64,000 nucleotides of DNA, taken from positions 40,523-104,522 of the forward strand of contig RHPI01000733.1 of NCBI GenBank assembly GCA_009103225.1, in the 5' to 3' direction. This DNA comes from Chlorokybus atmophyticus. Lineage: Eukaryota; Plantae; Mesostigma and Chlorokybus algae. The notes beneath the pieces were generated by a model. The model searched no databases, was not told the origin of the DNA, and saw only the letters and a program-made list of their open reading frames with translations. This document shows positions 15,448 to 64,000 of this stretch, piece after piece (the first letter of the stretch is position 1; each line of letters begins with the position of its first letter). Made by a program: the position numbers and the translations under genes.

Positions 15448-16047
15448 TGTCATGCCTATTGCCCGCGCATACCAGCCTTCATCGCGCATGCCTACATTGA
15501 AACCATCGCCCAGCCTACCAGCATACCAACGCGCGCGCGTCACTGACCAGTAGCTAGGTCATGACTCTAAAGTAGTTCACGACCATATCCTACCCAGACA
15601 CCGCGCGTAGCTGTTCAATTGTGAGTTCAGTTATATAAGTTGCATTCTATATTGAGTGGTGATTGCTGTGAAAATAGCCTCGTATATGACCGTTAGCTTA
15701 TGCTCTGAACAGTCATAATTTGACTTGTATAAGTGGTCACAGTGTTCACCGAATCAGCTGGTGACATTGTGAGTGAGAAAGCTAAGAGCTTGTGAAACGA
15801 CTTGAACTACGAAAATGTCATCCCGGTTACCAAGAACCCCCTCACTATGTGAGTGCCTGTGCATGCTCGTGTGCATCGTGCTTGTCATTGCTGTGAGCTT
15901 GGTGTGCTTGGTTGCAGTGTTTGTTGGCATCGGTTAGGGCATGGTACTCACGTATTGCTTGCTCATTCACCTCACTTAACAGTGTAACACATTTTTCGCT
16001 CATGCAAAAAACTGTGTAAACAGCACTATAGTAGTGGCTTGTTGACT
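15448..16047 (+). repeat. About 600-bp direct repeat, copy 1 (probable remnant of the 5' LTR)
   Basis: Aligns by eye with 38577-39161 from TGTCATGCCTATTGCCCGCG to GCTTGTTGACT, with scattered substitutions and small indels. Confidence 0.8.
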
Positions 16048-16464: not shown

Positions 16465-18216
16465 ATGGAGTCTTTCATCTCAACCACGTCCCTGCGCTTT
16501 TTCGGACGTGCTGGCACTACCTCGCTGGACGAATTTATCATTAAATTCTACTCCAATATGCGACAGTAGGCTCTGAAGAACAAAGACTGGTCGAAGGAGA
16601 TTTCTTTTCACATTGCTACTCGGTGTCTGGACCATGAAGCACATGATGTCTGGAAGTCTGTTGCTGAACTGCATCGAGTTGATGGCTATGGCGAGCTCGC
16701 CATTATCATAGCATCTGCGTCACTGCATAGTCCAGTAGCCGTCTTTCCACCTGCTACTCTCGCTGCAGTCACCGGGTTGTCCATAGCGGCAGCCATTGAC
16801 AGAGCAGAGGAGGAGTAATCTAAGTTGGTGATCATCAACCTGACCCCTGCAGAAATTGAGTTCAAGATGGCCGCACAACGGGCCCGGATCCCAGACCGTT
16901 CTGCTGCCATCCTTGAAGAATAACGAACTGCCGTTGAGGTGGGCACACCCCTGCCTTTGGCAACACCCGGCTTTCATGCGAGAGGCAGTGCTTTCACCCT
17001 CAGGTCAGTCGCACTGCGCGCAGTAGCTATCCTTGTAGGTGCTGCCATCTCTGACCCTCCCCTGAAAGATCTATACGCTGCACTTCGTCGCACCTTCCCA
17101 CCGCAGACCACTAGCAAAGTGGAGGAGTTGAGGCGGTTCCGACGCAAGCCCAACGAGGACCCTCTACGCCTGTACTCCGGACTGGAAGGGCTGTTAAAGG
17201 ACACTGACTACAAGATCTTTAATGATGAGGCTGCTGCAGTGGTATATGTCAATGAGTTGAATGCCACCCTGAGCGAGTCGACGCGCCAGACCCTGAACTA
17301 CAGCAGGCTCTTTGGCTACACGCTCAAAGAAGCTTTTGAGACTGCACAAGCCATCCAAGCGCTTGGTGTATGAGAAGGTAGTGCTGGACCAACCCCAGCG
17401 CCTCGCGGTTTGCAGCCAGCACAACTGTTGAGCCTCCTCGCCGCGAACATGGCCGGACGCTCCACCAGCAGGCGACAAAGGGAAACAGTCAGCGCATACT
17501 GCTTTGCCTGCCCCTATAGCCATGCTCTTCCTTGCGAGCGTTGGCGTAGTTGTTGGTGTTGTTATGGCCTCCGGTATGGTTGCTGTTGTAGCCACCAAAG
17601 TTGTTGCCGTTGTGGCCTTCAGTGTTGTTGCTGTTGTAGCCACCAAAGTTGTTGCCGTTGTAGCTGTTGGCGGGTCTCAACTCAGGGAACTTGAGCCAGC
17701 AAACTAACTCCAAATGGCCTCATGGCGCGTATGGCGCGCTTGAAGGAAGACAAGGAGCAGGACTACCGCGCCTGCTACTCTGCCCGATGGGCATTGATGA
17801 CTCCGAAGCACACGAGAGACACCGGCACTCCGTCACGTATTCAACCATCCCGACGAGTTCGAGGGGAAGCCGCAACATCGTCAGCAGCTACCTCCACTTA
17901 AGCCACCAGTGGTGCTGCACCAGCAGCAACAGTTACACCAGCTATGACGTCAACTCCGTCAACATCAGCAACTACTCTAGTTGCACCACAATTTGGTACA
18001 TCGTAAGCATCGTGACGCCAACACTGATGCGCACGCTGGCAACAGCCACTGCTGTCACCAACCCTGCGGTCGTAAGTCGCACAGGTCCCGCTCCAACTTC
18101 AAGACCACCTGTGTCAGCGAGCGTTGAGACCACTCTCGCGCCACTGAGCGGCACTCTCGCCACCACCGGCAATGCCATCGTGGAGCCCGCTGCCACTGCA
18201 GCGACCCGCGCAGCTA
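16465..18216 (+). pseudogene. Retrotransposon gag, 5' part
   Basis: ATG 16465 is in frame with ORF 16939-17373 (LRRTFPPQTTSKVEELRRFRRKPNEDP, gag-like). In-frame stops at 16567, 16816, 16921 and 17371. Interrupted at the TA at 18215-18216. Confidence 0.65.
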
Positions 18217-18769
18217 CGTCGCAAATTTTACATGGTGACTGACTAAGGACTGAGGGACTTATTGGTGCCTGAGCCTGCCTGTTGCTGCCTGAAATATTAC
18301 TTTTGGACTATTGGGTTTGCCGTTGGCTTAAGTGGACTGACGCAGACGGCCGCGGGCCGAAAGTGGTTGTCAGTGGCACTAACCGGCCGAGAGTTGTCAA
18401 CCAGTTACCCTTTGGTCGATGTGCACAGACGGCCGTTGACCGCTAGTTACGGACAGCTGACAGCAATAGCCGGCAATTTCTTTGCCGTTACACTGCTGTT
18501 AATATGTGACCCTTGCCATTTGACAAAAGTTGGCAATTCTTGCCGTAAGCCAACACTAACATGCCATGCAGCTTGTACAAACCTTGGACTGATTGTTTGG
18601 TCTTGCACCTAAAAGCCCACAATATATACAATGTACGGGCAGTGGTGAGAGTATGTCCACTTACAACTGAGCAGCCGACTTGCGCATGAAACTATCCTAT
18701 AACATTGAGTCTAGCTGTCGGACTCATGCGCAGCTTGTCAACCCGTGGTGCCTGCCTCAGAACTCCTCC

Positions 18770-19630
18770 TCAAACCCCCTCCTCCTGTTCCTCCTCCGAC
18801 GAGTCTTCTGCTTCAACGCCAGAGTCATCCACTGCCTCGCTCGCTGACAGTACAGCGGCTACTTCGTCCTTCAGCTTGAATGTCAGCGCCTCGCCGTGCA
18901 CGCGCATGCGCTTGATGGTCGCTTTGAGAGTGACCACCTGCATTTGGTAATGCTGTAAGAGTGGCGTGCTGCCAGAGGACTAGCCCATCAGCATACACAC
19001 GCTTACCTCGTCTTCCGCTTTGTTGCACTCCGCCAGGCAGACAGTCAGCCTGCCGCGCTGCTCTTGGTTCACTCTGACCAACATGGCAATCTGCAAGCAT
19101 ACTGCTTAATTACCGCTGGAAACATTAAACTAGGTCATAGATTACCCGTTCGTTTGACTCCGCAGCTTCTCTTTTGCGACTTGTGAGCTCCCGCAAGTAG
19201 AAATAGGCTGTGCATTTGCGAGATTGGTCATGCTGTTCATGTGCATGACACTGGAGGTTGTGCATGAGGGTGTGCATGTCGTATTGACAATGTATGTCAA
19301 GTGCAAGATACTTGAGGCTGTGCATGTGCAAGATAAAAGAACCCTAGCATGTGGCATTGACAGTGCATCGTAACCCACCTTGGTTATGCCAGTCTTGTTT
19401 GGTCCCTTCAATCATGTCGCCGTGGTCGCAGCTGCTGGTGGGTCGGATTTTCTTAGAGGCAGTATTGTGGTGTGCCTTTGCCCACTCGGAGGGGGAGCCC
19501 TGTAAGATATCGCCCGAGTCACTGTTGTCATTGGATGTGCCCTTGGTAGTCTTGGTGGGGTTTGACACCGAGGACACCCCTCCGGCACCCTGCCCGCCCT
19601 GTGCGAACATGGAATTCATCCTGGACCTCG
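18770..19630 (-). CDS. Transposon cargo ORF-A, multi-exon, unknown function, acidic tail
   Basis: Phase-0 spliced exons ending at 19146, 19090-19007 (IAMLVRVNQEQRGRLTVCLAECNKAEDE) and 18937-18770 (VVTLKATIKRMRVHGEALTFKLKDE...DSSEEEQEEGV*). The 5' end is unresolved. Confidence 0.45.
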
Positions 19631-20041
19631 ACCACAATGCCCACTATGCCCCTGGCAGCTCCGTCAACGATCTTCCAAACGCCACATACCCTCGGCATCA
19701 CGCCCCTGTAAGGGCATAGCTTGGCGGAGCTATCAATGGTGTTTTCATGCGCAGGGGGACTGACATTGCCAGAGTTGTCAATGGTACGAACTGCCATTGC
19801 CATTGTACAAAGGTACCATTTCAATGGTACCTTTGTATAATGCCTATACCTTGGGGCAAAGGCATCTTCGTACCATTGAAACGGTTCAATCAGAATATAT
19901 ATGTATATATATATATATCCAGACTCACCCTGGACGTTCAATGGCTCGATCGTACTATTATAATGGTGCGACGGAGCCAGTGACTGGCGGCCAAGTTTCC
20001 CGCCTCTGGCATGCAAGGGTAGCGGTAGCGGTGGCGGTGGC

Positions 20042-20073
<32 letters not shown>

Positions 20074-20140
20074 GTGTGCGTGTTGCTGGATATGATGCAG
20101 GTTACATTGGCGACACCTGTGTCGACGTTAGTAGTGAGAT

Positions 20141-23100
20141 ATGGGAGTCCTTTGTCCGTATTGCCACATGCGCTTCGCCACACGCAGCTCGGTCTACATG
20201 CACATTATTAGCAGCAGGGTGTGCAAGCAGATCAAGCTGTATGTCGGCCAGCGTCCATTACAGTACGATGCGGGTCATGTTGAACCGGGGAGTTCGATCC
20301 AGGATGCTCACATGCTTGTTGCTGAAGGATTCCTCCAGAAGACACACAGCAGCAACAGGAGGAGGAGGAAGTGAACGAGGGCTTTCGATGTGTGCGTGTG
20401 CCTGAGAAACCTGTGGCACGCCAACATGGAAGTGGAGGCGTCCCTTCGCAAGCGTCGGAATCCAGGTGGTATGGCTCGGAGCATGCTCTTGCAGTGGCAT
20501 TCGTGCAGTGCAACAACGGCCAAGGCCTGTCGGCCTCCGACATGGGGCGGATCATCAAGTGCATCCGAAATGCACACTTCCTGACGGAAGAGCTCCAGTN
20601 CCTAACGGAAGAGCTCCAGTGGGAGACCGGTGTGCATGCTGCCAACTACCTCCGGACCACGATCGCTTTCTCTCAGTTTGAGGTGTGTTCACGGTGTGCG
20701 GTGCATGTGCTTCAACCATCAGAGCCATGTCACATATGCACATGCGAGTGTGCTGCCGTATCAGAACTACGTGACGGCTGACCTGCGCAAGCCTGGAGAC
20801 CCTGAGGATCAGGACATCTGCGTCACATATATGCCGGCCAAGGTCTGTGAAATGCAGTACCTAATGCAGTATCGATGCAGTATCTATTCTGAGGCCAGCA
20901 TAGTAAGTAATGCTCTTGGTCGGAGCAGGTATGGCTCGCGCGGTTGTATGGCAATCCACATGCCGCCAATGGCTTCAATCTCCAGTACACTGGTGACGAG
21001 CACAGCTTTGGCCATCCTTCCACGGGCGATTGGTGGAAGGATGTGGAGGTGCATTTGAGGAGAGAGGTGGGGGAAGCGTCCTACTTGGCGCCTGCCATTC
21101 TGTACAGTGACAAGACCACGCTGGACAGCGCGGGCAAGCGCTCTGGCTACCCTCTGATGGCATCGCTTGCCAACTACAGTTGGGACATGTATGCTAGCAA
21201 CATGAGGGTTGTTATGATAGCGCTTCTGCCGGTGGTTCACGCAGTGGCCGGGCATCCCACCTGGGCGCAGGGCAAGGAATCGTTCTCCCTTCGAAAACGT
21301 GAGATTTTTCATGACGCTTTGAATATAGTGTTAGGGGATGTGAAGCGGGCGAGTTGGGAAGGTCTGCAGCTCATCGACCCAAATGGCATCGAGCGTCGTG
21401 TGTTTCTCGCGCTTGCCAACTACATCAGCGATTTGCAGGTAGTGGGCATGAATGGTTGTAACCGGATGCAGCCTGCCAGCAAATAGTGCATGGAGGATGT
21501 TGTCAGTAGAACATCTGAGTTTGTCGTGTTTTAGGAGACTGCCACACTTGCACGCACTGTGTCGGGCAACCAAACACGACATCCTTGCGATGTTTGTCTC
21601 GTCACCAAATCAGATCTGTTGTAGACGGATGAGGACTGGGAATTGAGAACCGAGGCCTTCTACACACCAGCACTACGTCAGCTGCGGGCGGACCTGCATA
21701 GCGGTGTTAGGAATGCACGCCAGCCAGCCAAGGCTTTTAAAGAGCAGCACTCCATGCATGTCGAGGAGGTAATGGTCAAATTACCGGCATTCGTGAGGAT
21801 GAATGGCTTTCCGTGAAACCAGGCAATGTGGTTTGGCAACAGAATGCACTGTGGGGTTGGCGACAGTCGCGGGTGCCGGGAGCTGACTGCTACTCTCGTC
21901 TTGCCCCTGACGCAATGCATGTGCTGGGAGGCATCATTGACCACCTGCTTGCTGCTGTGCAAGACGCCGCAAAGGAACGAATGCGTCCATCCACGAGACA
22001 AATTCTGCAGGCCAGGCACGTCTTTTGTGTTGCTTTTGTGTTGAACACTCAAGCCAACAACACGTGCTCACGAGCAGATGTGCACAGGCTGAATGCATGC
22101 AAGGCGACTCTGCGGGTTTCGCACTGCAAGGCACCCACAAGCACAGTAGATATCTTCCTGTCCGACCACTCCTTTCAGATGGTGGAGAAAGTGGCGGTGC
22201 TGCAGCTGCTGCCGGTCCTCGCAGACGGTTTGCTGCTCGACAGTGAGGGCAACGATTTCTTCACCATTGCTGCCGCATCGCTTGCCCAGTGGAACAAGAA
22301 GTTGCTGAAGGCGCATGAACACACAAGAGAGACCCTGACCACAGCCGACAACGAGCTGGCTGCCTTCAAAGCTGCAGTGTTGCATCCGCTACTGTCGTCA
22401 TATTCTGCACAGAAGTCAGGTTGGAAGATTGAGAAGATGCATCAGCTCACTCATTTTGGGCCGGCAATTGTCAGCAGTGGACACCCAGATTGGTTCAGCG
22501 CCAACCGCATGGAGCAGACGCACGCTCAAAATATTAAACGGTGGGCGCGTGGTGGCAACAACCGGGACTACCAGGCACGTATCTTGAAGGCATGGAGCTT
22601 TGCGGAATATGTGAGAGAGGATGGCATGGTCGTGGATCCCGAGATGCGCTCGGTCATGGCACAGGCGCGGCAGCAGTGCTGTAATGTCATGGAGAAGACG
22701 GACAAGTTGCTACAGATGGATGTGCTGACAAAGAGGGAGTCCAGCCCGTACTGGGACGGATCTGCGCGTAGCCGCCAAGTCGCCTTGAAGACTCCATTTG
22801 CCGACAAGCTGCCTGCCACCCTGAACAGGTGGTTGAGGAGGGAACAACTGGAGTTGGCCGACGGGTGGCGTGCTGTTCGCGTGGTGAACGGAGGCGCAGC
22901 GGTGTACATGACATTAGGAGTCAGCATGGCGCGCGCAACTGGGATGTTCCATGGGCGGCCTTGGTTCTCTACACTTGAGTTGGAAGGTGATGAGGACGGT
23001 GTGAACGTGACGTGGTGGGCTCAGGCACTCCTTTTTCTGCGCGTGGTGGTGTGGGGTGGTAGCGGCGAGCGCGTGTGGAAGGAGGTCGTGTTTGTCCGCT

Positions 23101-23300
23101 GGTACACGAAGCTGGATGTGACGAGCGACACAAAGTGCATCGCTCTGGAATGGGAAAAGCGTCGAGGCGGTCCACATCTCGATGTCGTGACTCTGGAGCA
23201 AGTAAAAGGCATTGTCCAGCTGCTCCCCATGTTTGACAAGGACAGCGCCCGTGTACAAGAGGGCAAGTATTGGATGAACGTTCATCGCACTTCCACGTGA
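20141..23300 (+). pseudogene. Plavaka-family transposase (N-terminal C2H2-like finger), disrupted
   Basis: Motifs PSTGDWWK, ILYSDKT, GYPLMASLAN, FHDALNIVL, LANYISDLQE, PCDVCLV, PDAMHVLGG, KMHQLTHF...G...SANRMEQTH, ARATGMFHGRPWF, VFVRWY. Exons 20141-20682, 20765-20842, 20929-21438, 21535-21768, 21843-23300. Frameshift near 20340 and TAG at 21622-21624. Confidence 0.85.
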
Positions 23301-23503
23301 CACATGTACTTGTCTCGCTACTCTGAGTTTGGAGCATATCAGTCAGTTAGGCATTGCTAATCGTATGCTAAGACTTTTGCATGTGGACGTGTACAATACC
23401 GGGCAGCTGTCACTGCACAACTGTCACCACAATCGAATGATCCATGCAACATTCAACAATCAGTCCGCCGTGTGGCATTAAGCATCAATACAGTGCACCA
23501 CAC

Positions 23504-25228
23504 TCAAGCCTCATAGTTCCATGACACAGGAGGGTAGTCACAGCGCATATCCATTGTTTCAAGCATGAGACGCCCTATGCACTCCGCCATTGCGGGAGGA
23601 ACTGCATTCGCTATGGAAACGGCCGAGGTCATCCATGGCACTCCCAGCGCTGTTTGCCACGCAGCAATGCCGCCCCTGGTGCTTGGAAGGCCATAGACCG
23701 GGTACATCTGCTGTGGCGCGTTTGATGTCACGATTGTCTTCTTCGCGCTAGCGGACAGGTGCGGCGATAGTAGTCCAACTGCCTTGCCCGCGTGCGAGAA
23801 GCGTGCTGGTGGGGTAGCTACCATTGGCTATGTCTCAAACAGACGGTGTCGGAAAGTTGATAGGCCAAACATTGTGCCATAAAGGGACAGATTGGGTCTG
23901 AATGAGGAAGCTGCTCCTGGCACATTCTCAATCACAAACTTGCCCTGGCTTGCAAGTAGCAGACGTCGGACGAGCGGTATCATATCTTGGTGTCTCCAGG
24001 ATGTGCCATGTGCCGCCCGTTGAGGTGCCGGGATAGCACCTGAATAGGCCTGGCATGGTGGACTGGCCCAGATGAGCTCGTACTCGCTCAGCTCTCCTGC
24101 ACTCAGGGTGCATCGCGGTGTATGAATGGCAGCGGGTACTCAGAAGAGGGACTTATGTCCATCCCGGTCACGTCAAAGCCTGCGTAGTATAGACCGACAC
24201 TGGCACCGCCACCGCCGCAGAATAGGTCGAGTGCCCTTGGTCTGCGTGTGCGTCCCAGCTTGTTGTCAAATGGCGTGTATGTGGTCAAGGCTGGCCGTGG
24301 TGCTGGCCAGGGACTAACAATGATGCCGTCCGGGCTTACTTTGCGACTGACGTTCTCCCCTCCGGCGCGCAGAACATGGCGTGCCCCGTCAACTGATGTG
24401 TACGCGAATACGTTGTGCCCTTGAAAGTTTTTGGTTTGTGGTCGATCACCGTCATTGAATACTATACGGTGCTGCCCTGCAAAGACATTTTCCATTGCAC
24501 CATGCATATATGATGCGTCCTCAATCTCGCACGCCACGAAGCGATGCTGACCTGACGCTTGCTTGAATGATTCCACAACGCCCGCATACCATTCCCCATC
24601 CAGCGGCCAATGCACCATGACACTCACACCGATCAGCTGCTCGCATCCCAACTTAACTGCGTTCCGCAGCCGATGCAGTGCGCTGTCCAACGGTCGATGG
24701 TCTGCCTCCTCTACAGCGGCCAGGGGATGGAACTGCCCACGCCCACACCGTGCAAGACTGCTCTGAATGCGACAACAGCTTCAACATGCATGAAATAAGC
24801 ATACGCCCAACATAACATGCAGTGATACGTCGCGGTCCACTCTTGTGGATTACCTCCACAGCATCCACCACCTGTCCACTAACCACATGTCCCGGTGTTG
24901 TCCATGTGAAGAAGCGCATGGGTTCCCCTCGCCACTCGAAGCATGAGCGCGAGCACGATTCGCACACGCACTGCACGCAATGGAAAAACTCGGGTTCCTT
25001 GCACAGCACTTGGCCGAGGCGGCAGCCAAACACGTCGACATTGTGTGTGGTGTGATGCCAGCAAGCAGCACTAAAACCGTGGCACACTGTCTGCACTCGC
25101 TGGCATTCGGTCAAGTGTGCTCGCATTTGCTGCCTACGGCCATTGGCACATACGTACGCATTGCATTGTGGGCACACCAAGCATGGTCTCCTAGGTGAGG
25201 GTGATTCAACTGCTGCCGCCGACATCAT
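23504..25228 (-). pseudogene. Cys-rich / Tudor / C5-cytosine DNA methyltransferase fusion (about 520 aa when repaired)
   Basis: Exons 25228-24854, 24762-24552 and 24476-23504 splice in frame. Tudor-like LIGVSVMVHWPLDGEWYAGVVESFKQASGQHRIVFNDGD. MTase motifs: I RALDLFCGGGG, IV IWASPPCQAYS (24050-24061), VI FVIENVPG (23921-23929), VIII GTMFGL..RHRLFE, X IANAVPPAMAECIG. One frameshift at about 24105-24112 and a TAG at 23828-23830. Confidence 0.85.
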
Positions 25229-25800
25229 GCAAAATAGGAATCGGCACGGCTGCCCACAAACTGAGCGAGACTTTAGGGTATGGGCATCAATTTAGGGTTG
25301 CCAGCTTACGAACCCTAAATGGGTCAAACTTCAAGTGAAGCACGACTGTACCTTATACGCTATTGCAGTACCATGCATGGTACTACATCAACATGAATGG
25401 TACTCNTACAGTACAAGGATACTCGCAGGCACGATCGTGGAGTAATACTGTGCTGTTATGCCATGGAACCCAAAGCGCTGTCCGAGTTTGTTGCTGTCAA
25501 CCACGCTTTAAACCAGCGAGGTATGCAAGCCATGCACTGACTCATGCGCCGGGCAGTCATCATACACATGTACAGCCAATGCTTCTAAAACAGCAGATAT
25601 CTGGTGCACCATGCACCATGCTGCAACTATACATGTACCTACATGGTTCACAGGAAGCCAACACAAAACTACAATACATGCACAATTGGCATCAAGGCGG
25701 GGGCCAAATCACCGCCGACACGTTGGCGTCTTGCATCAGGCGTGGCGACCAAAACGGGTGAGGTTGCTTGCAGAATGGACACGCTTGTAGATTCTTTGAT

Positions 25801-26727
25801 TTATTTGCCACAGTCTTCTGATGTGCTATGATGCAGACATGGCACATCGCTTTCTTGCAACAGGGTGTCTCCCCATCCGCTGGGGGGGGGTGGCTCTTCG
25901 ATGCGACAAATTAGCACACATGGTGCACGCGGGTGTGCAAGCTGCCTCTGCCACCAAACTCTCTTATTGCGTCGCAGGCGTAGCGACTCCCATCTGAATG
26001 GCGCAGCATAACGCTCCACTGCCTGCACGATCACCTGACGCCCATCTGCCGCCATACACCACCTGCTGGTCTTGGTGGTCTCGTCTAGCATGCGTTCATC
26101 CAGGCCCTTGACATGGCTGTCGTCACTCGTGTACTCCCCCGCATCGTCATTTTCTTCGAGCTTCCACAGAATCAGCTCGACGTGCCGTATGACATACAGC
26201 CACTGCCAGCCAAAGCATGCCAAGTACAGCTCGAATGGTTTTACTTGCCACCCAGTATGTTTGCTCAGGTAGTGGCACACATCTCGACCCGCATTAGTCG
26301 ACATCGACAGGTACATCTGCTGCAGCAGGTCGAAGTTCTGCTCCGCAGATAGCTCTTGCACATTGCCGGGGTGCTGCGTCAGCAACAACACCATCATATC
26401 GAGGACGGCGAGGGGCAACAACGTACTACGGATGGCCATTTCGTGTATGGGTTCCAACCACGGCCAATCCCCAGAAGTCTGTTTAGACCGCATTCTCCGC
26501 GTTTGCTCCCACTTATTGCAAACTTTCGTCACCCACCTCGAGGCATGCCGCATGCGGTGATGCAGCGCGTCTTGGGCGTACTGTAGGGTGATCAACTCCT
26601 TTGCACTACGAGTTAGCCCCCCAAAGCGTCTGCGCGTCGGTGCTTTGAGCTTAGGCAGCTCGTGCCGCACCGGCTGTCTCTCTGGACGATGCTGAGCAGC
26701 CACTAGCCTTTGGCCGTGACGTGGCAA
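25801..26727 (-). CDS. Transposon cargo ORF-B, unknown function (up to 308 aa)
   Basis: Long open non-repetitive ORF with protein-like composition; no family recognised; start uncertain. Confidence 0.5.
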   Translation of the reverse strand: MPRHGQRLVAAQHRPERQPVRHELPKLKAPTRRRFGGLTRSAKELITLQYAQDALHHRMRHASRWVTKVCNKWEQTRRMRSKQTSGDWPWLEPIHEMAIRSTLLPLAVLDMMVLLLTQHPGNVQELSAEQNFDLLQQMYLSMSTNAGRDVCHYLSKHTGWQVKPFELYLACFGWQWLYVIRHVELILWKLEENDDAGEYTSDDSHVKGLDERMLDETTKTSRWCMAADGRQVIVQAVERYAAPFRWESLRLRRNKRVWWQRQLAHPRAPCVLICRIEEPPPPSGWGDTLLQESDVPCLHHSTSEDCGK

Positions 26728-26740
26728 CCTCGGCCGTCAG

Positions 26741-28011
26741 CAACCCTTCCCCAAGCAAGTGGAAGATTGGCAACGAGGTAAGCACTGTGTGACACTGTGA
26801 CACTGTGTGTATGTGTGTAACGGATTGTTCTTCTGTCAAATCATAAATGGCCACTGGGTAGAGAGCCACATTTATCCCAAGGAGGACACTATTCGTAACG
26901 TCATGTGTCAGGTGCTGTGAATGCTTCATGACCGCACTGCACCGTGACACTGACCAACCTGCCCGTGACAGGTAGTTGGCTTCGACCATGACGACGAGGC
27001 CGATGCGGCCAAGTTCTATGAGGTGTACTGGACTCCCAAGGAGTGCCCCTTCCACTGGAGTGTCGCCCTGAAGAAAGCTACGCAGGTCCGGTCTGAGAAC
27101 GCTACCAAGATCAAGCATGTCCTTGAGAAGGAGTACAAGTGGACACTGTTTAACAGCAACAAGCGCAAGTGAGTTGGGTCCCTCACCACCATGTCTGCTA
27201 TGCAACACCGCCTTCTTACTTAGCCTCCATACACACGTACTCATCTCGCCTATTGTAACCGATTCAATCAGGCACATCGATGCCCTAATGGACCCCGAGA
27301 CCCAAAAAGCCCAGATGCGCAACGCGCTCCAAAGTAAGTCACATGCACTATTCTAGCCTGGTGCAGGCTCAACTTGAACTATCTATTTCGTGACTAATGC
27401 CTTGTCGGTATGACTGTCGCAGACAAGTCATGGCGGAGATTTGAGGTGACCGACACTGCAGACCCGGAGCGGAGGAGATACATCCATGAATGGGGCAATC
27501 CCATAATCTGGCAAATGATCGTGCAATGCTGGTCTTACGCCGTCACTACACCTGGTCGCCGGCAGCTGACAGTCAACCACCTCGCACACCTGTTGCTTAC
27601 GGTGAGCACTCTGAACTCCATCATTAGCAATTCAGGAATGCTGTAGCCCCAAACTTCAGGCTTGCATACGCGTTGCAGTGAATAGTGGCTTTCGATGCCA
27701 CTAAGACATGCCTGTAAACTGCGCAGGTGGAGCGCATCCTAAAGGGCAAGGATGGAGACCCTCTCCTAGCTGCCAGCATAAACACACATGAAGAGTACCT
27801 CAGCGAAATCAACACCATGATCATGTCAATGAAGCGGGAGATGAGGCAACGGTACGCAGCCCTCCAGCCATTCACCCTTGTGAAACGCCGCACTGCATCT
27901 TGTGTCGAATACCTGAAAGAGTCCAATCGGCGCCGGCCGCAAGAGAAAGCAGCTCGTGACCCGCTCGCTGAGGCAGAAGCGGCATTTGATTGGCTGGCAC
28001 AACCGTTTTAG
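26741..28011 (+). CDS. Transposon cargo ORF-C, multi-exon, unknown function
   Basis: Phase-consistent GT-AG exons ..-26777, 26862-26911, 26972-27168, 27272-27333, 27423-27601 and 27727-28011 give an open protein (ESHIYPKEDTIRNVMCQVVGFDHDDEADAAKFYEVYW...EWGNPIIWQMIVQCW...AFDWLAQPF*). The 5' end is unresolved. Confidence 0.6.
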
Positions 28012-28494
28012 GAGGAAGAGCAAGCTCCGGCGTCTCCTCCACAGGCCCCAGCGCGTGGTGCTTTGTTTCGTAATGACGAGACCAGCGATGATGGAGAGGA
28101 GCTGTAGCGCAGTTGGTAGTCCGTTTATCTGGTAGTGTACATAGCTACAAGGCTCTTGTGACTGAGTGTTGTGCATCTTAAACCAGCTCAGTCAATCGTC
28201 ATTATGCTCATGCACATCAATACTTGCATCCCTATGATATACAACAGAACTGCATTCGAGTCACATAATCGACCTACAAGCCTTGGCAAGTGACTGAGAG
28301 ACACTGTACACATTTCAGGTACATGTACACAGCACAGGCACATAGCAATGCTGGACGTCAGTGACAGTCGCGTGTAGTCAAGCTATGCAAATACATATGA
28401 CGACAGTTAGGCATTGGTCACCTTCAGTTGTTAAAGAATGCCTTATTTTGTCGATAATTACCTAGTTGGTGCTTGTGAATTAGGCTTAGTCGCC

Positions 28495-28790
28495 TGCGCT
28501 GGACTGGTGTGTAACCTGCAGGTGCCTGTCACATAGGCTGAGTCACCTAAGTAAGACTGATGTGTAGCTTACAGGTGCCCGTTGGTTAGTTGTAGTCACC
28601 TAATAAGGCCTGATGTGTAACTAACAGTTGCCTGTAAATTACATAAAGTCATTTGTTAAGGCCTGGTGTGTGACTAACAGGTGCCTGTTAATTATATAAA
28701 GTCACCTGTTAAGGCCTGATAGGTAACTATCAGGCGCCTGTTAGTTAGGCATAGTCAACTGTTAAAGACTAGATTGTAACAAAAAAGGCC
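28495..28790 (+). repeat. Subterminal tandem array, 53-bp period, about 5.5 diverged copies
   Basis: CAGGTGCC-like core recurs at 28519, 28572, 28625, 28678 and 28731. Confidence 0.85.
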
Positions 28791-28930
28791 TTACAGTAAC
28801 GAAAGTTACTATTAGGTCCCTGTATCAAGATTACAGGTGGCCTGAGCCACGACAGTCTCAATTAGCGTCCTCAGGTGCACGGCCGTTGCCAATATTTAGT
28901 CGGCCGGCAGGGAAAACATATTGCGACGTA

Positions 28931-31470
28931 CATTGCCCGCCCTCGACGTCATTCAAGCTGTCCCGCGAGATTAGCAAGCTGAGCGCGCATGGGAGACCAT
29001 CATGCGTGGAGTAGATCCCACTACCATTGCTGTTGGGCGCGTAAGAGAGCGCACAATACGCGTTGAACGCAGTGACCGAGTCTTTCCTCTACCTGAATAT
29101 CACACCCTGCCAAAACAGACTCAGCGGCAACTGGAGGCTGAAATCCTCGCCGGCACGGCGCCTCCCATGCGAGACCGCGTCTGTATGGTCAGAACACCTA
29201 TTGTACTGAAGTTTGCACTACAGCTGTTCTGAACTCTACATAACAACATACAGACTGCGCCACGCCAGCCCGCATCAGTCCGCCATGAACCTTTTTAGTC
29301 GAGCTCGCCGGACACGTATTGGGACCGGCAACCAAACGCACAGCAGCACATCGCTGATACAGCCAACATGCCTATCGGTGACAATGAAGCACTACGACCC
29401 CTCAGTACCGTTCGGCTTCATGAGCGATACACCGCTCTAGAACAGGCGTTCACCTGGCGACAGGACCAAGCGGCAGCAAGTAATGCAAGATCGCAAGCCC
29501 TTGCCGATGCTCGCGCTGGTGTTCTTTAGTCAATAGACGCTGGCCCATCATTCAGCACGACACCTCTCGTCGGTGAGCCCGACATTGACCAGGCGCGGGC
29601 GCGGGCCTAGCAAACCAGGGGTTTTACCGCCCCGCTGCTACCCGCCTTGTTGGAAGACTTGCCTACCGATCAACGGGATCTAGGGAGAGGCTACTCCACA
29701 CCACAAGGGTGTACACGACGGGATGGAGCAGGCTCAATTGGAGAATAGCAACTTCGCACAGCCCTGTTGCGACAAGCAACCATGCTACATCGATAAGAAG
29801 GCATCGGCCAGAGACGGATGATGGGGATGCGAGAAGGTGGCAATGCAGCTCGAGCAAGACTAGTGACTTGGCTAGTCACCACTCACCCCGCAGTGCCTCT
29901 GTTCGCCTTCGCTACCAGGTTGTTATGGTTGAACGCCTTTTTTCGCTCGCTACGGCAAGCCTATGACGAGGTTGCCTCGGCAGCCACTGACACCTGAGAA
30001 GGAGCTTAAGAGGCCATACTGAGGTTGCCCGGGGTGGAAGCAGCGCAGTAACGCAGACGCATCGCAGCTGCTTATGAGCAGCATGTCCGACAGCCAGAAA
30101 TTAACCTCACTGTGCGGGCACGAGCAACAACGGTGCTAGAAGTGGGGGTGATCAATGGCAGATGGGATGCCTACATTGTAGGGATCCTAAGGGTTCCCAC
30201 CATCACCCATGACATAAGAGCGCGGCTTCTGCGCGCAGTGTATCTCCAACCCATGCCTCAGAATCACCGCTGAAGTGATGTGGTCAATAATCCAACATCC
30301 ACATGGGAAGGTACACTGGTCAGGGATGCAGCTCATGCGGTACGCTGGACTTATGTGGAAAAACAGGCTGCACGAGAGGCGGGCCCACCAACACCCGGTC
30401 CTCCAGGGTTTCCGCAACAGCCGCTGGCTATGCCGCCAGGTATGACCCCGGCCACACAGAGGCGCAATCCCCCTGCGCCACAACCAGGGCAACCACAGGC
30501 AGCACCGCCAGCACCCAGGCCGCAGCGCATATACCAACAGCCAACACAAGGACGGTTCGGGCCAGGCCGCGGTCAAGGAGGTTGTCAAGACCCAGCTGAT
30601 CGAGGGGCGCTTGCCGCACTGCGCTCGACACCATTGGAGGAGACTGCAGCAGCAGTCACCCCACGCACACGCTACCGACGATTCAGGCGGCTGCGCATCC
30701 ACGCCAATGCAGCCATAATCGCCAACCAAGGCAAGCATGTCACTATCAATGGACGAGCACCCAAGCGTGTGATGCTGGACTCTGGAGCTGAGCCTGTCAT
30801 CATCGGACATTACCTCGCACGTGACCTTGGCAGCATGGCACCAGCGCTGAGCTGATGCCATGCTCATACGTGCTCGACACAACAACCGGCAGCCGTGACA
30901 AGGTGATTGGCATCACCAAGCAAGCCCTCTGTATTCGCTTGATTGGGGTGGACCCTTCCCACAGCACCGAGGTCATACAGAAGTGTGTGGTCACCGATGC
31001 AAGATCCATTGACCTGTTGCTGGGACAGGACTTCAACTTCCCTGATGGCATGGGGCTGTACTGAGAAGGCATGGTTTCGTCCTCATTAAGATGAGGAGGA
31101 TGGAGAGGTTCAAGGATATCTGCCTCTCGAGCTGGTGGCTCGCACTCGCTCTCACCGAAGGTCAGCTGCAACAGCCATCTACAGGTCGATGTCGACAACC
31201 ACTGATAGGTCAGCTGCAACAGCCACCCACAGGTGGGTTTCAACAGCCACTAACAGATCAGTTGCGGTGGTCACCCACAACTCGGACCAAGACTCTCCAA
31301 TCCCATACGACGAATCTCAGAAAGATGCCACTGAAGACGTGGCCCACCAGAAACCAGCGGAACGCCGCTGGTGCGCACAGGTGGTCGCACATCTACTATT
31401 GATCAGACTACGGCTCACTTCACGGTTCCCTCTCTACAGGGACCAAGCTGCGGTCCAGGAGCAACACCAG
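28931..31470 (+). pseudogene. Retrotransposon gag 3' part and aspartic protease, degraded
   Basis: Continues the gag frame after the insertion. GKHVTINGRAPKRVMLDSGAEPVIIG and VTDARSIDLLLGQDF are retropepsin-like. Confidence 0.7.
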
Positions 31471-31981: not shown

Positions 31982-32859
31982 ACGTACCGGTAGGGTCGCA
32001 TGGCAACCTACATCATGTAATTTATTGCATGCGCCGACAGCCGCTTGGCGACTGTCGGCCGGCGGCAGTAATTGCCGATGGACAGTCGGAGATTGTGTGT
32101 CGCTTTGATAGGCCCACAGGCTGAGCCTATGCAATTGTAGCATTTATAGGCTGTACCAGTTACATGGACGGTGGTAAACTACATACCGGTAGCCGCGAAC
32201 TCGGCGGTTGTCAATACGCCAGTACAATTTGTAGACTTGTTAGGGGCTGTCATTGTGACAATGCTTAGTGATAGTAGCCAAATTGCGACTGTCAATGCAG
32301 CCAGTGTACCTTATCGGGCTGTCGATGATTCTGTGGTCGCATGAGGCTTTTATAGGCCATTTATGAGGTTATACAAGTAAGGCTATAAGTCATAACATCT
32401 GACATTGCTTGCGCTTTCGTTTCATACACAGTATTAAAACCAATCATACCATAAACTACGCCTAGCAATGCAACATGCGAACAGCATCAACATATGTATT
32501 CATGGTATGATGTTAACGGTTGTGAACATTATGATAATGTAATAACCAACGAACTATATGAAATGCAATTAACACGCGCAATGCATGGATGTAAATTTGA
32601 TATAGTTATTATTTTAGACTATGTAATTGTACAGTAATCATAACACTTTGTACAATCATATTTTTATACATTATTTAAGATGTATATAATTTTACATATG
32701 AAAGGTCTAATGCACATGTGTACGCGCATCAATATACTTACAACAATGTATGTACATGAAATGATAGATATGAAGTAATTGCACGGATGCAAATTGCGGC
32801 CGCAATACGTCAACAATTTTTGCTTGTATACCTTAAGCCTATTCCTACATGCACACACA

Positions 32860-33022
32860 AACACACGTATATTTGTCAACATATATATACATATGCATGT
32901 ATACATATATATATGTATATATATATATGTGTGTGTGTATATATATATATGTATATATATATGTGTGTGTGTATATATACACATATATTTATATGTATAC
33001 ACATATCCATTTATACATATAT
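32860..33022. repeat. (TA)n/(TG)n microsatellite
   Basis: Imperfect TATA/TGTG run inside the CACAC element. Confidence 0.9.
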
Positions 33023-33595
33023 AGGCCACAAGTGGACAGCCGCAACTGGTCGGCGGCTGTCAAGTTAAAATGTACATGGACAGCCGGCTGTCAATATACA
33101 TTGACAGCCGCCGACCATTTGCGACTGTCCACTTTATGGTAAGCGGCGACAGTCGGTGCGGCCTGTCATTTATTAAATGATACACACAATGTACCTATGT
33201 ACTCGTACATGCAATAACGATACTTCAGTCATGGTACACGTGTAGCGCGCCCTGCAGGGCCGCCAACCAGCAACATTGCTGGTCCATGCCGCCCCATACA
33301 TGGTGCGGCACGGACCATGTACGGTGCGCGGCTGCCGGGCCGCTGAGCCGCGGGCCCACTCCTGGTCCGCATCCAGGAACCAGCGTAGAGTACTGGTCCG
33401 TGCCGCACCATACAAGGTGCGGCACGGACCATATGTGGTGCGCGACTGCGCGCCAGGTGTTGGGGCCCCAAAAGGACCATGGACGGTCCGTCCCTCGCGG
33501 ACCAGACACTCGTGGTCCGCGGGGACGGACCATGTATGGCCCGCGGGGTCCGTGGAAGGACCATGCATGGTCCCCGAACGTCAATCCGTGTGCAG

Positions 33596-35060
33596 GTGGC
33601 CACTGGAGTTTCACGTATTCCGTCAACAACAAGGCATCACCGTGTTGAAATCATTTGGAGGTATAGGTAGTGGCCTCGCTGCTGTCCTCAACACCGGCGC
33701 GACGGTCACCAAGTACTTCTACTTCTGTGACCCTGATCCACATGCACAGCTTGCCCTAAGCCACCACCTGCGCCACTGCAAGGCGATTTGAAGGCACTGT
33801 CACAACATCCGTTTAATCACTACGGATCACCTCCTGGCGGTGGGCAACATCGATCTGCTGATAGTAGGATGGGAGTGTCAAGAACACTCCAGAGCAGGCA
33901 GACGTCAAGGACTCGCTGATTCTAGCTCGCGACTACTCTGAGAATTGATGCGTATCATTGAAATTGTCATGGCCCACTCGACCACAAAAGACTTGGTGAT
34001 GTAACGGGAAGGTACATTGAAATTACCACCACTCGACCACAAAAGACTTGGTGCTTTTATGGTCGATTTGTGGTAATTTCAATGTACCTTCCCGTTACAT
34101 TCCCCCCACTTAAGAACGCTGACGTCCCCGGCAGCTGGCGCCCCATCAGCTGGGGAATCATCCCAGGGGTCCAATTTAGGGTCCGTCACCGGCCCCACCA
34201 CCCAAGGACCGGCCAATTTAGGCCCATACCGGTCAACGCGCGCATAGCGCACCGCTGCCGGCCCCACAGGTCACGTCGCCGCGATAGGCAGGTCGCGCTC
34301 TACCGCGCCGTTTCAACTGGTCAGTTCGGCGCGACTGTCATTAGGCAAGTCGCGACCCATCGATGATGGCACTTATACAGTGACCATTTACGATGATTAT
34401 GGGATCGCGAAACAGCGACCACGGAATTCGTGTGCAAGGCAGGAATCGAATCCGGGTCTCAAGCTCCAATGACCAATGTCATGGCCCAGTCGACCACAAA
34501 AGACTTCGTGCTTTTATGGTCGATTTGTGGTAATTTTAATGTACCTTCCCGTTACAACAATTTTGCAGAGCAACCAACTGTGCAGGCCTCCAGGATATAT
34601 CATCGAGAATGTGCACTTCGAGAACGATAAGCGCCATCACGTGTCCAACAACTTTCGACAGGTGTGTTCTTTACTGAAGCACCCTTCCAAAATCAACGCA
34701 GCGCGTCAAAACTCCCGTGCTCATCGCGTTCGCACCAAGTGGACCAACCTGGCTGCCGTTGAGGATCTCTTTGCTGCTGAATATCTGCACAGCAATTGTC
34801 CACGCGATCTCACCGTCGACGCTCCCCACTCTGATGTCTTACCCATAATCATGCGCCTTCCGCAAGCAAGGCGAAGGCATGGTGTTGGATCCCAACACAG
34901 GCCAACTGGAGGAACCCAACGGACGTGAGCGCGAACGCGCCATGGGATTTTCTTCAGGCAGTATCACAAGTTCCACGCTGACCGACAATCAACAATGTCA
35001 ATTCTTGAGATGCGCCATGGACCAGAATAGCATGGTGTGGTTATTGAAAGTATGCTTTGC
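33596..35060 (+). pseudogene. Retrotransposon-borne C5 cytosine methyltransferase domain, split by a TRIM
   Basis: GITVLKSFGGIGSGLAAVL (motif I), IDLLIVGWECQEHSRAG (motif IV), GYIIENV (motif VI), NAARQNSRAHRVRTKWTNL (motif VIII). TGA stops at 33789 and 33939. The 3' end is approximate. Confidence 0.8.
33965..34556 (-). mobile_element. TRIM-like mini LTR element (about 80-bp TG...CA LTRs)
   Basis: LTR 34477-34556 and a rearranged copy at 33965-34099. On the minus strand a PBS-like TTGGTCATTGGAGC follows one LTR and a PPT AGTGGGGGGAA precedes the other. No coding capacity. Confidence 0.7.
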
Positions 35061-38295: not shown

Positions 38296-38345
38296 CAACT
38301 AAGCTCTGGCGCTGGAACCTCCCCAGAAGCTCAGGGGGGGTGGCT

Positions 38346-39383
38346 TGTTAACTGTGTGTCCTACAGCATGTACACTAAGGAGGACACCGCCTCCACATGT
38401 CCGTGTGATTCAGCAACAGCGAAGCAGCTCCACCAAGCACTCCTCGCCATACAAGCTGGGTTATCTTTTACTTGTGCTACATGTTACAACATGTTGCAGC
38501 AACATGGCTAGCAAGCATGTCTTTCCCTGCAGCGGCCCGAGACAGTGTGGCCCTCGAGTCTCCTCGACCCAACAGCTGTCATGCCTATTGCCCGCGCATA
38601 CCAGCCTTCATCGCGCATGCCTACATCAAAACCATCGCCCAGCCTACCAGCATACCAACGCGCGCGCGTCACTGACCTGTAGCTAGGGCATGACTCTAAA
38701 GTAGCTCACGACCATAGCTTACATAGGCACCGCGCGTAGCTGTTCAGTTATGAGTTATGTTCTATATCAAGTGGTAATTGCTGTGAAAATAGCCTCGATA
38801 TGACCGTTAGCTTATGTTCTGAACAGTCATGATTTGACTTGTATAAGCAGTCACAATGTTCACCGGATCAGCTAATGACACTGTGAGTGAGAAAGCTAAG
38901 AGCTTGTGAAACGACTTCAACCGCGAACACGTCATCCCGGTTACCAAGAACCCCCTCACTGTGTGAGAGCCTGCGCATGCTCGTAGGCATCATGCTTGTC
39001 ATTGCTGTGAGCTTGGTGTGCCTGGTTGCAGTGTGTTTGTTGGCATCGGTTAGGGCATGGTATTCACGTATTGCTTGCTCATTCACCTCACTTAACAGTG
39101 TAACACATTTTCCGCTCATGCAAAGAACTGTGTAAACAGCACTACGTATAGCTTGTTGACTGTGTGTCCTACAGCACAGCATGTACACTAAGGAGGACAC
39201 CGCCTCCACATGTCCGTGTGATTCAGCGACAGCGGAGCAGCTCCACCAAGCACTCCTCACCATACGAGCTGGGTTATCTTTTACTTGTGCTACATGTTAC
39301 AACATGTTGCAGCAACAGGGCTAGCAAGCATGTCTTTCCCTGCAGCGGCCCGAGACAGTGTGGCCCTCAAGTCTCCTCGACCC
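38346..39383 (+). repeat. 3' LTR region with A-B-A' structure
   Basis: A = 38346-38570 is repeated as A' = 39154-39383; B = 38577-39161 matches 15448-16047. Starts with TG directly after the PPT. Confidence 0.7.

Positions 39384-60531: not shown

Positions 60532-64000
<3,469 letters not shown>

Follow-up and report, generated by a model that had tools for sequence, protein, structure and literature searches.

Plavaka elements have been described with 5′-TGT..ACA-3′ termini (A type) or 5′-CATCA..TGATG-3′ termini (B type), creating target duplications of 2 bp in the A type and 2-3 bp in the B type (PMC12730594), and in the published tree, as outlined in that paper, the TGT type branches from within the CATCA type, leaving the latter paraphyletic (PMC12730594). 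The PlavakaB elements of Agaricomycetes (PlavakaB-1_SLL, Plavaka-11_AB; Kojima 2025, PMC12730594) have short termini followed by an A/T-rich run and 2-3 bp target duplications, reach 6-9 kb and more, and in some cases carry a DNA-modification gene (PMC12730594). Larger elements are known from red algae, where giant Plavaka of 17-19 kb carry three accessory genes (Bostrychia, Chondrus; bioRxiv 10.1101/2025.02.11.637652), and from Amoebidium, where Plavaka-flanked gene clusters extend up to 50 kb (10.1101/2024.01.08.574619). Mobile elements carry demethylation enzymes (TET/JBP) and retrotransposons carry DNMTs (PMC5890265), with retrotransposons encoding cytosine methyltransferases reported from dinoflagellates and charophytes (de Mendoza 2018, PMC5890265), and DNMTs gained by lateral transfer and termed ‘orphan’ have also been described (PMC12344493).

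In the window analysed here, meaning the whole 64,000-nucleotide stretch of DNA, the region from about 18217 to 28928 is rather likely to be one old, inactivated insertion of the Plavaka lineage, with a TA duplication and a methyltransferase gene as cargo. By homology of its transposase, the element is a member of Plavaka, a lineage of DDE cut-and-paste transposons in the EnSpm/CACTA-Mirage-Chapaev clade. The transposase gene, which is disabled, was placed at 19348-23297 on the + strand using PF18759, tblastn, and splice sites. The PF18759 match (E 2.5e-20) reached 73.4 bits against a cut-off of 26.3 over profile positions 76-228, and about 650 amino acids, in three homology-supported exon blocks, are collinear with full-length relatives, the 840-864 aa Plavaka-domain proteins that include P0006 and P0032; in P0006 the tblastn alignments cover residues 186-385 and 419-838. 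An exhaustive search returned 223 transposase relatives at E<=1e-3. The N-terminal exon lies within 19348-19716, of which 19587-19712 has a tblastx match to the upstream exon of a JGI metagenome family, and a C2H2-like finger was recognized in the ORF at 20138-20371 by a weak C2H2 match (E 0.008). The DDE core exon (20911-21438) is followed by two GT..AG introns (21439-21534 and 21760-21842), removal of which restores the alignment and the frame, and by the C-terminal exon (21843-23297), all on the + strand. Alignment to relatives and direct reading located, on the same strand, the D in ILYSDKT (21097-21120), the D in ANYISD (21415-21432), the H(3)H motif HQLTH (within 22434-22457), and the E region with the E in NRMEQTH (22503-22523), while the C(2)C motif HPCDVC (21580-21597) is found in the exon after the first intron; a catalytic role for the DDE, C(2)C, and H(3)H residues is predicted by homology. 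These motifs, together with the Pfam score and the collinearity, confirm that the sequence-only reading was right to call the element Plavaka-type. The gene is broken by one in-frame TAG (21622-21624, +). The assembly has a join inside this gene, marked by an N at 20600 that separates the two members of a 20-nt near-duplication.

Tail to tail with the transposase gene, with 210 bp between them and similarly slight decay, is a gene for a Tudor-C5 DNA methyltransferase (23507-25228 on the - strand, possible start codon at 25228 in MMSAAAV), also disabled. The Tudor domain (about 24636-24440, -) is interrupted by a 75-nt GT..AG intron (24551-24477, -). Its match to PDB 7de9, in which the PDS5C Tudor domain of Arabidopsis is in complex with H3K4me1, had an E value of 0.008 before removal of the intron and 6e-9 afterwards (7de9_A, 45 residues, E 6.3e-9), compared to E 0.004-0.09 for the 53BP1 Tudor domains, and aromatics are retained in the alignment at the W, W/Y, and F positions of the aromatic cage; PF21743 matched at E 3e-4, under its cut-off. 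The C5 methyltransferase motifs I (FCGGGG, 24231-24205), IV (PPCQ, 24067-24050), VI (ENV, 23938-23915), VIII (23854-23831), and X (NAVPP, 23611-23594) are read in order on the - strand, where the frame is broken twice, by a 1-nt frameshift within 24139-24106 and an in-frame TAG at 23830-23828, and PF00145 on the joined exons scored 23.6 bits against a cut-off of 22. An assembly chimera is excluded by the position of motif I in the same ORF as the Tudor domain.

The methyltransferase matched 388 loci in IMG/VR and 310 GenBank phage records annotated as DNA methyltransferase, the latter aligning across 98-100% of the catalytic domain with 38-40% identity (E about 1e-38). The enzymes of actinobacteriophages (Mycobacterium, Streptomyces, Gordonia, and Arthrobacter phages) are collinear over the full length of the ~230-aa catalytic domain at 38-40% identity and, as here, have motifs I, IV, VI, VIII, and X and a short target-recognition region; they are stand-alone prokaryotic proteins, whereas the domain here is fused downstream of intron-containing eukaryotic Tudor exons. 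The gene, as its alignments indicate, joins a PDS5C-type Tudor domain with a spliceosomal intron inside to an intronless C5 methyltransferase of phage or bacterial type, for which the enzymatic activity, the sequence targeted, and the ligand of the Tudor domain are predictions from homology. The only cellular-type relative found was the N-terminal methyltransferase of a reverse transcriptase polyprotein (P0151, locus L001), with 28% identity over the whole catalytic domain (pairwise E 1e-20), and the catalytic domain here is closer to the actinophage enzymes (38-40%) than to this protein. Like the element described here, the DNMT-encoding retrotransposons are mobile elements with a C5 methyltransferase, although in those the enzyme is contained within a polyprotein, while here it is a separate gene with a Tudor companion and its probable carrier a cut-and-paste DNA transposon.

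All transposase and methyltransferase coding sequence falls inside the proposed ends, 18217-28928, and the element is correctly called multigene insofar as a second real gene sits between them. An earlier count of five genes in alternating orientation is reduced to the two that could be verified, the transposase (+) and the Tudor-methyltransferase (-), the other ORFs being unsupported. Two long overlapping ORFs of 233 and 311 aa from the ORF lists (25804-27352, -) are a possible third gene, as they look coding and the GC skew agrees with coding on the - strand; searches with them gave no Pfam match, PDB match, or database homologue, and a single-sequence AlphaFold model was unusable (pLDDT 40). 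The short ORFs of 82-127 aa listed on both strands at 27398-28191, for which neither a family nor a homologue was found, are not counted as genes. A repeat search identified a tandem array of six 53-nt units (28468-28785, +; TRF period 53) located 143-460 bp from the proposed right end, i.e., subterminally, in which each unit junction forms a near-palindrome, about AACTAACAGGYGCCTGTTAGTT. The repeat family was not found elsewhere in the window, and the left end, which scored 19 in comparison with the 53-nt unit where the background is 21-24, was rejected as a further copy. The red algal and Amoebidium Plavaka likewise have non-fungal hosts, several accessory genes including DNA or chromatin modifiers, internal tandem arrays of inverted repeats, and mostly degenerate copies. 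Their cargo consists of PAG1-3 (an N6-adenine methylase with a SET domain, a ParB-like 2OG oxygenase) or tyrosine recombinases in 17-50 kb, in contrast to the C5 methyltransferase in an element of ~10.7 kb, in which no homologues of these genes were detected.

The proposed left terminus is 5′-CGTCGCAA (18217-18224, +), continuing AATTTTACATGG, and the proposed right terminus is TTGCGACG-3′ (28921-28928, -), reverse complement CGTCGCAATATGTTTTCCC. Direct reading confirmed the reported perfect 8-bp inverted terminus and the TA on both sides (18215-18216 and 28929-28930), which in a single copy is a putative target-site duplication; each terminal octamer has one occurrence within the window. Searching about 5 kb at each end for perfect 8-bp inverted repeats with a 2-3 bp flanking duplication yielded 40 pairs, 32 of them with a 2-bp duplication, and since block shuffles gave a mean of 32 pairs compared to the 40 observed, the TIR plus TA is not above chance by itself. 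The weaker subterminal similarity that had been claimed amounts to 16/30 matches ungapped or ~16/21 with two gaps, and 35% of shuffles score as high in local alignment. Neither extended or gapped TIRs nor subterminal motifs common to both ends exceeded the shuffles, and no step in CpG o/e, TG/CA o/e, or GC was seen at the element borders.

Circumstantial support for ends at 18217 and 28928 comes from their likeness to known Plavaka termini, from the inclusion of both verified genes between them with the 53-nt array in a subterminal position, and from the stop-free 184-codon ORF that leads up to the left end. The terminal pentamer CGTCG fits C-R-T-C-R, the pattern common to the PlavakaB CATCA and the CATCG of the JGI metagenome family, and 9% of shuffles yield such a pair by chance. 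In 5′-CGTCG..CGACG-3′, three of the five positions match the B type and the other two are A/G transitions, position 2 being G here and A in every described Plavaka B-type terminus. The short termini are followed, as in PlavakaB, by an A/T-rich run, with CATCAGAAATTTGG in PlavakaB and CGTCGCAAATTTT here identical at 9/13 positions and two of the four mismatches being A/G transitions. The PlavakaB elements differ in their fungal host (here an apparent green alga), their CA start (here CG), and their cargo, a TET/JBP dioxygenase in place of the cytosine methyltransferase with a Tudor domain, and DDE core identity to them is only about 30% or less. Elements of EnSpm/CACTA proper have 5′-CAC(TA)..GTG-3′ termini and 3-bp duplications; the termini proposed here, which begin CGTCG and have a 2-bp flanking repeat, are not of that kind.

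Among the relatives, the JGI metagenome family, which ranks in the top three for the transposase in the exhaustive search (33% identity), has the left terminus CATCGGAGG (CATCG) at three independent insertions; the left end alone is fixed in this family, the right end lying past the fetched DNA and one locus (L094) being rearranged. The Closterium loci L003 and L004 proved to be the same locus in two assemblies, in which an internal repeat was not found, and L002, a single copy with only chance TIR candidates, was set aside for termini. Self-BLASTN found no second copy within the window, and neither a second copy nor an empty site was found in the public data searched. Protein searches for close relatives of the DDE exon yielded only a 552-bp contig with 70% identity, no homologue of the 519-aa C-terminal transposase ORF was found in the public data searched, and two metagenome scans gave no close relatives. 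The exact ends are plausible and, in one copy, unproven: a precise delimitation is not shown, given one copy with no empty site found, a TIR plus TA at chance level, a second terminal pair that is statistically equally good, and a host ORF that is not demonstrably a gypsy gag.

A somewhat unlikely reading, though one that carries weight, is that no intact ends exist, both terminal pairs being chance and the Plavaka part being a remnant, truncated or rearranged, next to an unrelated gene or a different mobile element to which the Tudor-methyltransferase belongs, in which case the 10.7-kb multigene element would be a composite of neighbours. This would fit the ~32 such pairs that arise by chance, the decay of both genes, and the setting, a draft assembly of nested degenerate repeats that was joined at two points within the region, 20600 and 25406; in addition, the sole cellular-type relative of the methyltransferase is within a retrotransposon polyprotein rather than a DNA transposon, and no methyltransferase-like gene was found in the fetched related Plavaka loci. 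However, there is neither a reverse transcriptase nor a second transposase between 23.4 and 28.9 kb, the two genes lie close together, tail to tail, and are decayed to a similarly slight degree, chance is an unlikely source for one of the two motif-bearing pairs (5-9% each), and epigenetic accessory genes recur in Plavaka elements.

Other ends for the same Plavaka element, 18716-30092, are improbable. This pair, 5′-TGTCGGAC..GTCCGACA-3′ with a GC duplication at 18714-15/30093-94, would be of the PlavakaA type (TGT..ACA) and also combines a perfect 8-bp inverted repeat, reaching 12 matches with one 2-nt gap, with a 2-bp duplication. It has the heptamer TGTCGGA, found unchanged at the right end of PlavakaA families from fungi, whose duplications are of 2 bp, and such an A-like pair was seen in only 5% of shuffles. 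Against it, PlavakaA is a derived clade within fungal Plavaka in the published tree, as that source outlines it, and the JGI family, the closest delimited relative of the transposase, has a CATCG terminus. Moreover, the right end would fall inside the stop-free 30052-30270, in frame with a protease-like ORF (30274-30852), the 53-nt array would be 1.3-1.6 kb away from that end, and no alignment between the two ends continues past the repeat. Assignment to ESTA, an EnSpm-like lineage defined by TA duplications, TA being the flanking dinucleotide here, is extremely improbable, as the Plavaka Pfam model is passed at three times its cut-off with end-to-end alignment to Plavaka-domain proteins, ESTA transposases (compared by description) were recognized only via RAG1-like remote similarity, and a single TA is uninformative on target specificity when Plavaka 2-bp duplications take any sequence.

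For the favored reading, a Plavaka insertion with most likely extent 18217-28928 and short termini, the following course is proposed. The element would have entered a eukaryotic, probably green-algal genome, landing in older repeats that lie upstream of a gypsy-type pol, itself degenerate, and would have duplicated a 2-bp target (TA) in the manner of other Plavaka elements. The transposase may have bound the termini, and perhaps also the 53-nt subterminal array, and would then have excised and reinserted the whole unit, including the methyltransferase gene as cargo. The Tudor-methyltransferase gene adjoins the transposase gene and is probably carried by the same element; that the two travelled together we infer only from their location between the proposed ends. 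In an intact copy, the Tudor-methyltransferase would be expected to write 5-methylcytosine at chromatin recognized by its Tudor domain; the nearest Tudor domain of solved structure binds H3K4me1. Such a gene would be an epigenetic modifier borne by a transposon, a counterpart to the TET/JBP genes for demethylation in fungal Plavaka and other transposons. The present copy is worn out, with disabling lesions in both genes, and would now be incapable of transposition or methylation.

The ends and the size of the cargo add little: Plavaka termini and 2-3 bp duplications, which had been called poorly documented, were published in 2025 (PMC12730594), and bigger multigene elements than the supposed five-gene cargo are known, at 17-19 kb with three accessory genes and in clusters to 50 kb. 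The new point is the cargo, a Tudor domain fused to a C5 methyltransferase, as no DNA transposon with a Tudor-guided, phage-derived C5 methyltransferase was found in the literature searched. Tentatively, a green-lineage Plavaka family could mobilize a chimeric 5-methylcytosine ‘writer’ composed of a phage-origin methyltransferase and a eukaryotic Tudor domain of the H3K4me1-binding kind. If so, a cut-and-paste transposon would add cytosine methylation at sites defined by chromatin instead of removing it, the mirror image of fungal transposons carrying the TET/JBP demethylation genes, and would offer a possible route for ‘orphan’ DNMTs to enter or spread in eukaryotic genomes. Intact copies, if they exist, would allow direct tests of how DNMTs that arrived by lateral transfer come to have chromatin-reader domains, whether transposon DNA methylation serves self-control or host manipulation, and whether such elements seed lineage-specific algal DNMT families.

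The insertion had also been described as interrupting a gypsy gag whose reading frame is restored when the element is removed. The ORF at 17664-18242 (+) reaches the proposed left end after 184 codons free of stops and terminates 8 codons into the element, and removal of 18217-28930 does join it in phase with the ATG at 29002, with one TAG on the way (28972-28974). This part of the claim stands, although it is weak, since an in-phase junction is a 1-in-3 chance and rejoining lengthens the ORF by only 13 codons; over the following 223 codons there are 4 stops in the in-phase frame, compared to 5 and 14 in the other two. The gag itself was not upheld, as Pfam recognizes it in neither flank and no homologue matches either, and the gag-like look of segments at 16.4-17.4 kb and 29.9-30.3 kb was set aside as without Pfam support. 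When flanks and cargo were combined into one protein query, the sole match was P0151, through the methyltransferase; this search scored only the 8000 candidates that had most words in common with the query, and the lack of other homologues is therefore weak evidence. That the flanks are one interrupted gene is not demonstrable. Beyond the proposed element, a weak aspartic protease match is present near 30.77 kb and pol domains are clear at 35.7-38.3 kb.

The window holds a genuine remnant of a Plavaka-lineage DNA transposon, and the assignment of the element to the Plavaka type in the sequence-only reading was borne out by a plus-strand ORF at 20911-21483 that matches the Pfam Plavaka family (PF18759) with an E value of 2.5e-20. 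An exhaustive HMMER search with the DDE exon returned 223 relatives, the closest 70% identical and located on a 552-bp metagenome contig, the remainder at most 38% identical. Two full-length relatives with Plavaka domains, P0006 (840 aa, GCA_965154635.1) and P0032 (864 aa, Closterium), are collinear with 20935-21654 and 21843-23156, and alignment and reading frame are both restored once two GT..AG introns (21439-21534 and 21760-21842) are removed. The D residues (ILYSDKT and ANYISD), C(2)C (HPCDVC), H(3)H (HQLTH) and E (NRMEQTH) of the transposase, all encoded on the plus strand, agree with the published Plavaka description (PMC12730594). Upstream, an ORF at 20138-20371 carries a weak C2H2-like finger and the upstream exon of a metagenomic Plavaka family (the JGI family) has a match at 19587-19712, which together place the transposase gene at about 19.35-23.3 kb. 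An in-frame TAG (21622-21624) aligns gap-free to the relatives and, barring an error of the draft assembly at the TAG base, makes this copy a pseudogene. In Closterium, a Plavaka gene model (L003:11808-13978, and L004, which is the same locus in a second assembly) has an intron-like part containing about 2 kb of tandemly arrayed copies that are 86-92% alike.

A second gene lies on the minus strand at 25228-23507, tail to tail with the transposase gene and 210 bp from it, and consists of exon ORFs of a C5 cytosine methyltransferase with motifs I (FCGGGG), IV (PPCQ), VI (ENV), VIII, and X (NAVPP) in order. The joined exons score 23.6 bits against PF00145, where the cut-off is 22. The relatives of the enzyme were unexpected. 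It matches 310 GenBank phage records annotated as DNA methyltransferase, mostly from phages of Mycobacterium, Streptomyces, Arthrobacter, Gordonia, and Paenibacillus, at 38-40% identity over 98-100% of the domain (E about 1e-38), and 388 loci in IMG/VR match likewise. The only cellular-type relative found was the N-terminal domain of P0151, a reverse transcriptase polyprotein (28% identity, pairwise E 1e-20), and a PDB sequence search detected no DNMT1/3-like or M.HhaI-like methyltransferase. P0151 itself (2592 aa; L001:1727-9505 on an ENA metagenome contig) carries a reverse transcriptase besides the N-terminal same-clade C5 methyltransferase and also gives a weak NUDIX match; it is therefore a DNMT-bearing retroelement. 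Alignment of the window's catalytic domain with the phage proteins stays collinear through a 1-nt frameshift (within 24139-24106) and an in-frame TAG (23830-23828), both of which are lesions and not introns. Upstream of motif I, in the same ORF, is a Tudor domain. With a canonical 75-nt intron (24551-24477) spliced out, the E value of its match to PDB 7de9 falls from 0.008 to 6e-9; that structure is the PDS5C Tudor domain of Arabidopsis with H3K4me1 bound, and the 53BP1 Tudor domains are the next-ranked PDB matches. The second gene thus joins an intron-bearing eukaryotic reader domain to an intronless enzyme of phage or bacterial type. An assembly artefact is excluded as the source of the fusion, because a single ORF contains both motif I and the Tudor domain, and membership of the methyltransferase in the element depends on the unverified ends.

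Five genes in alternating orientation had been proposed for the element. Two were verified and these are convergent, whereas one to three ORF sets are unverified. Minus-strand ORFs of 233 and 311 aa (25804-27352) look coding and had no database match; the ORFs at 18247-18609 and 27398-28191 are short and were unsupported as genes. The element had been rated of high interest for its poorly documented kind of ends and its large cargo, grounds that no longer hold as Plavaka termini and target duplications have been published and giant multigene elements described (17-19 kb with PAG1-3, and gene clusters of up to 50 kb). Reports of Plavaka elements cover fungi, red algae, chlorophytes, streptophyte algae, and Amoebidium; the accessory genes known from them encode TET/JBP dioxygenases, a SET-domain N6-adenine methylase, a ParB-like 2OG oxygenase, and tyrosine recombinases. 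C5 methyltransferases are known within retrotransposons, DNMT-encoding DNA transposons being mentioned only in marine viruses (PMC5890265), and laterally acquired "orphan" DNMTs are also known (PMC12344493). The open-access literature yielded no description of a Tudor-C5-methyltransferase gene in a Plavaka element or in any other cellular cut-and-paste transposon, and the interest of the present element lies in its cargo.

The exact ends of the Plavaka remnant are plausible, though unverified. The octamers on which a precise delimitation had been based are present, CGTCGCAA at 18217-18224 and TTGCGACG at 28921-28928, each occurring once in the window and with TA directly outside, but the terminal signal is at chance level. 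When 5.1 kb around each end was searched for perfect 8-bp inverted repeats with a 2- or 3-bp direct repeat outside, 40 pairs were found, 32 of them with 2 bp, and the block-shuffled mean was 32; the 8-bp repeat with TA is by itself not above chance. Beyond the octamer, the ends match at 16/30 positions without gaps and at about 16/21 when two gaps are allowed. When the terminal 150 nt of both ends were aligned locally, the score was no higher than in shuffles, and no compositional step was found at either border of 18217-28928.

Published Plavaka termini are of an A type (TGT..ACA, 2-bp duplications) and a B type (CATCA..TGATG, 2-3 bp duplications), the A type being nested in a paraphyletic B type (PMC12730594), so that a CATCA-like terminus is expected for a non-fungal element. 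The left terminus CGTCGCAAATTTT fits the series CATCA / CATCG / CGTCG and is identical at 9/13 positions to the PlavakaB-1_SLL terminus CATCAGAAATTTGG. In JGI metagenome 3300060284, three independent insertions of the JGI family (L005, L011, and L013), whose DDE exon is 33% identical to that of the window and ranks third among the relatives, all start with 5'-CATCGGAGGTTCC, and their upstream DNA is unrelated. Shuffled sequence yields a C-R-T-C-R pair in 9% of cases, and the terminal-motif resemblance that would speak for 18217/28928 is circumstantial. The JGI family is multicopy in metagenomes 3300060284/85, with the left terminus 5'-CATCGGAGGTTCCGAGCCCC at L005:4304, L011:4290, and L013:about 4315, several minus-strand ORFs between terminus and transposase, and common sequence reaching >16 kb; L094 is rearranged, its downstream 5.9 kb having been inverted and placed beside the DDE exon.

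We consider it somewhat probable that the ends are at 18217/28928. An alternative pair, TGTCGGAC with GC flanks at 18716/30092, delimits an interval that overlaps 18217-28928 in a staggered manner, so at most one of the two is real, and there is a smaller but appreciable chance that neither is. The pair at 18716/30092 has the sequence of the PlavakaA right-end heptamer, and 5% of shuffles produce a pair of its type by chance, but the right end of this pair lies within a stretch that has no stops and shares the frame of a protease-like ORF, and we regard this placement as improbable. Besides this position of the competing right end, ends at 18217/28928 are favoured by the phylogenetic expectation of a CATCA-like terminus, by a 184-codon open frame that ends at the left border, and by a tandem array (28468-28785) of six 53-nt units with palindromic junctions, an array that is subterminal if the right end is 28928.

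The sequence-only reading also held that removal of the element restores an interrupted gypsy gag ORF; the phase is kept, but the gag ORF is unsupported. Without 18217-28930, the frame 17664-18216 runs on to a TAG at 28972-28974, in phase with an ATG at 29002, and the rejoined flanks read CGCGCAGCTACATTGCCCGCC. This carries little weight because phase agreement is expected by chance in one case of three, the next 223 codons in phase contain 4 stops versus 5 and 14 in the other frames, and neither flank matched gag, another family, or any protein in the database searched. The stop-free ORF next to the proposed left end (17664-18242) matched no protein family; immediately before it, at 17561-17664, is a 24/48-nt tandem repeat (GTTGCCGTTGTAGCCACCAAAGTT). 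A gypsy-type pol with RVT_1, RNase H, an integrase zinc domain, and a PHD finger is found 7 kb downstream (35.7-38.3 kb), and LTR-like repeats at 15448-16047 and 38577-39161 are 89.7% identical and 23 kb apart; the insertion therefore lies within old repeat DNA. A weak aspartic-protease match lies near 30.77 kb. The degenerate pol (35525-38292, plus strand) terminates in the PHD finger, and to its right 38343-38584 recurs at 39151-39397, flanking the LTR-like block in an A-B-A layout. A further insertion may occupy the interval 32000-34600, separating the protease-like part of the gypsy element from its RT part. Within this interval, 32.4-33.2 kb is microsatellite-rich with 32-37% GC, and a 65% GC block (33176-33790), with ORFs of 130-180 aa open in five of six frames, is followed by short direct and inverted repeats (34029-34099 versus 34486-34556).

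The window, from a draft eukaryotic assembly, is roughly 52% GC and rich in GT/CA microsatellites, a composition that gives the impression of a chlorophyte, perhaps volvocine, genome, and contains a 334-N gap (1578-1911) and four single-N joins (20600, 25406, 39793, and 42117), the first two within the region of interest. At 20600, inside the transposase gene, a 20-nt near-duplicate with one mismatch stands on either side of the N. The 264 bp preceding 42117 repeat 35488-35751, where the gypsy RT region begins, with 100% identity, pointing to a contig end or a mis-join. Apparent host genes, recognized by eye only, are a PiT-type phosphate transporter fragment (101-628), an intronless aldo/keto-reductase-like ORF of 342 aa (4631-5656), for which a search by exact sequence gave no match, and a papain-like cysteine protease fragment (63086-64000).
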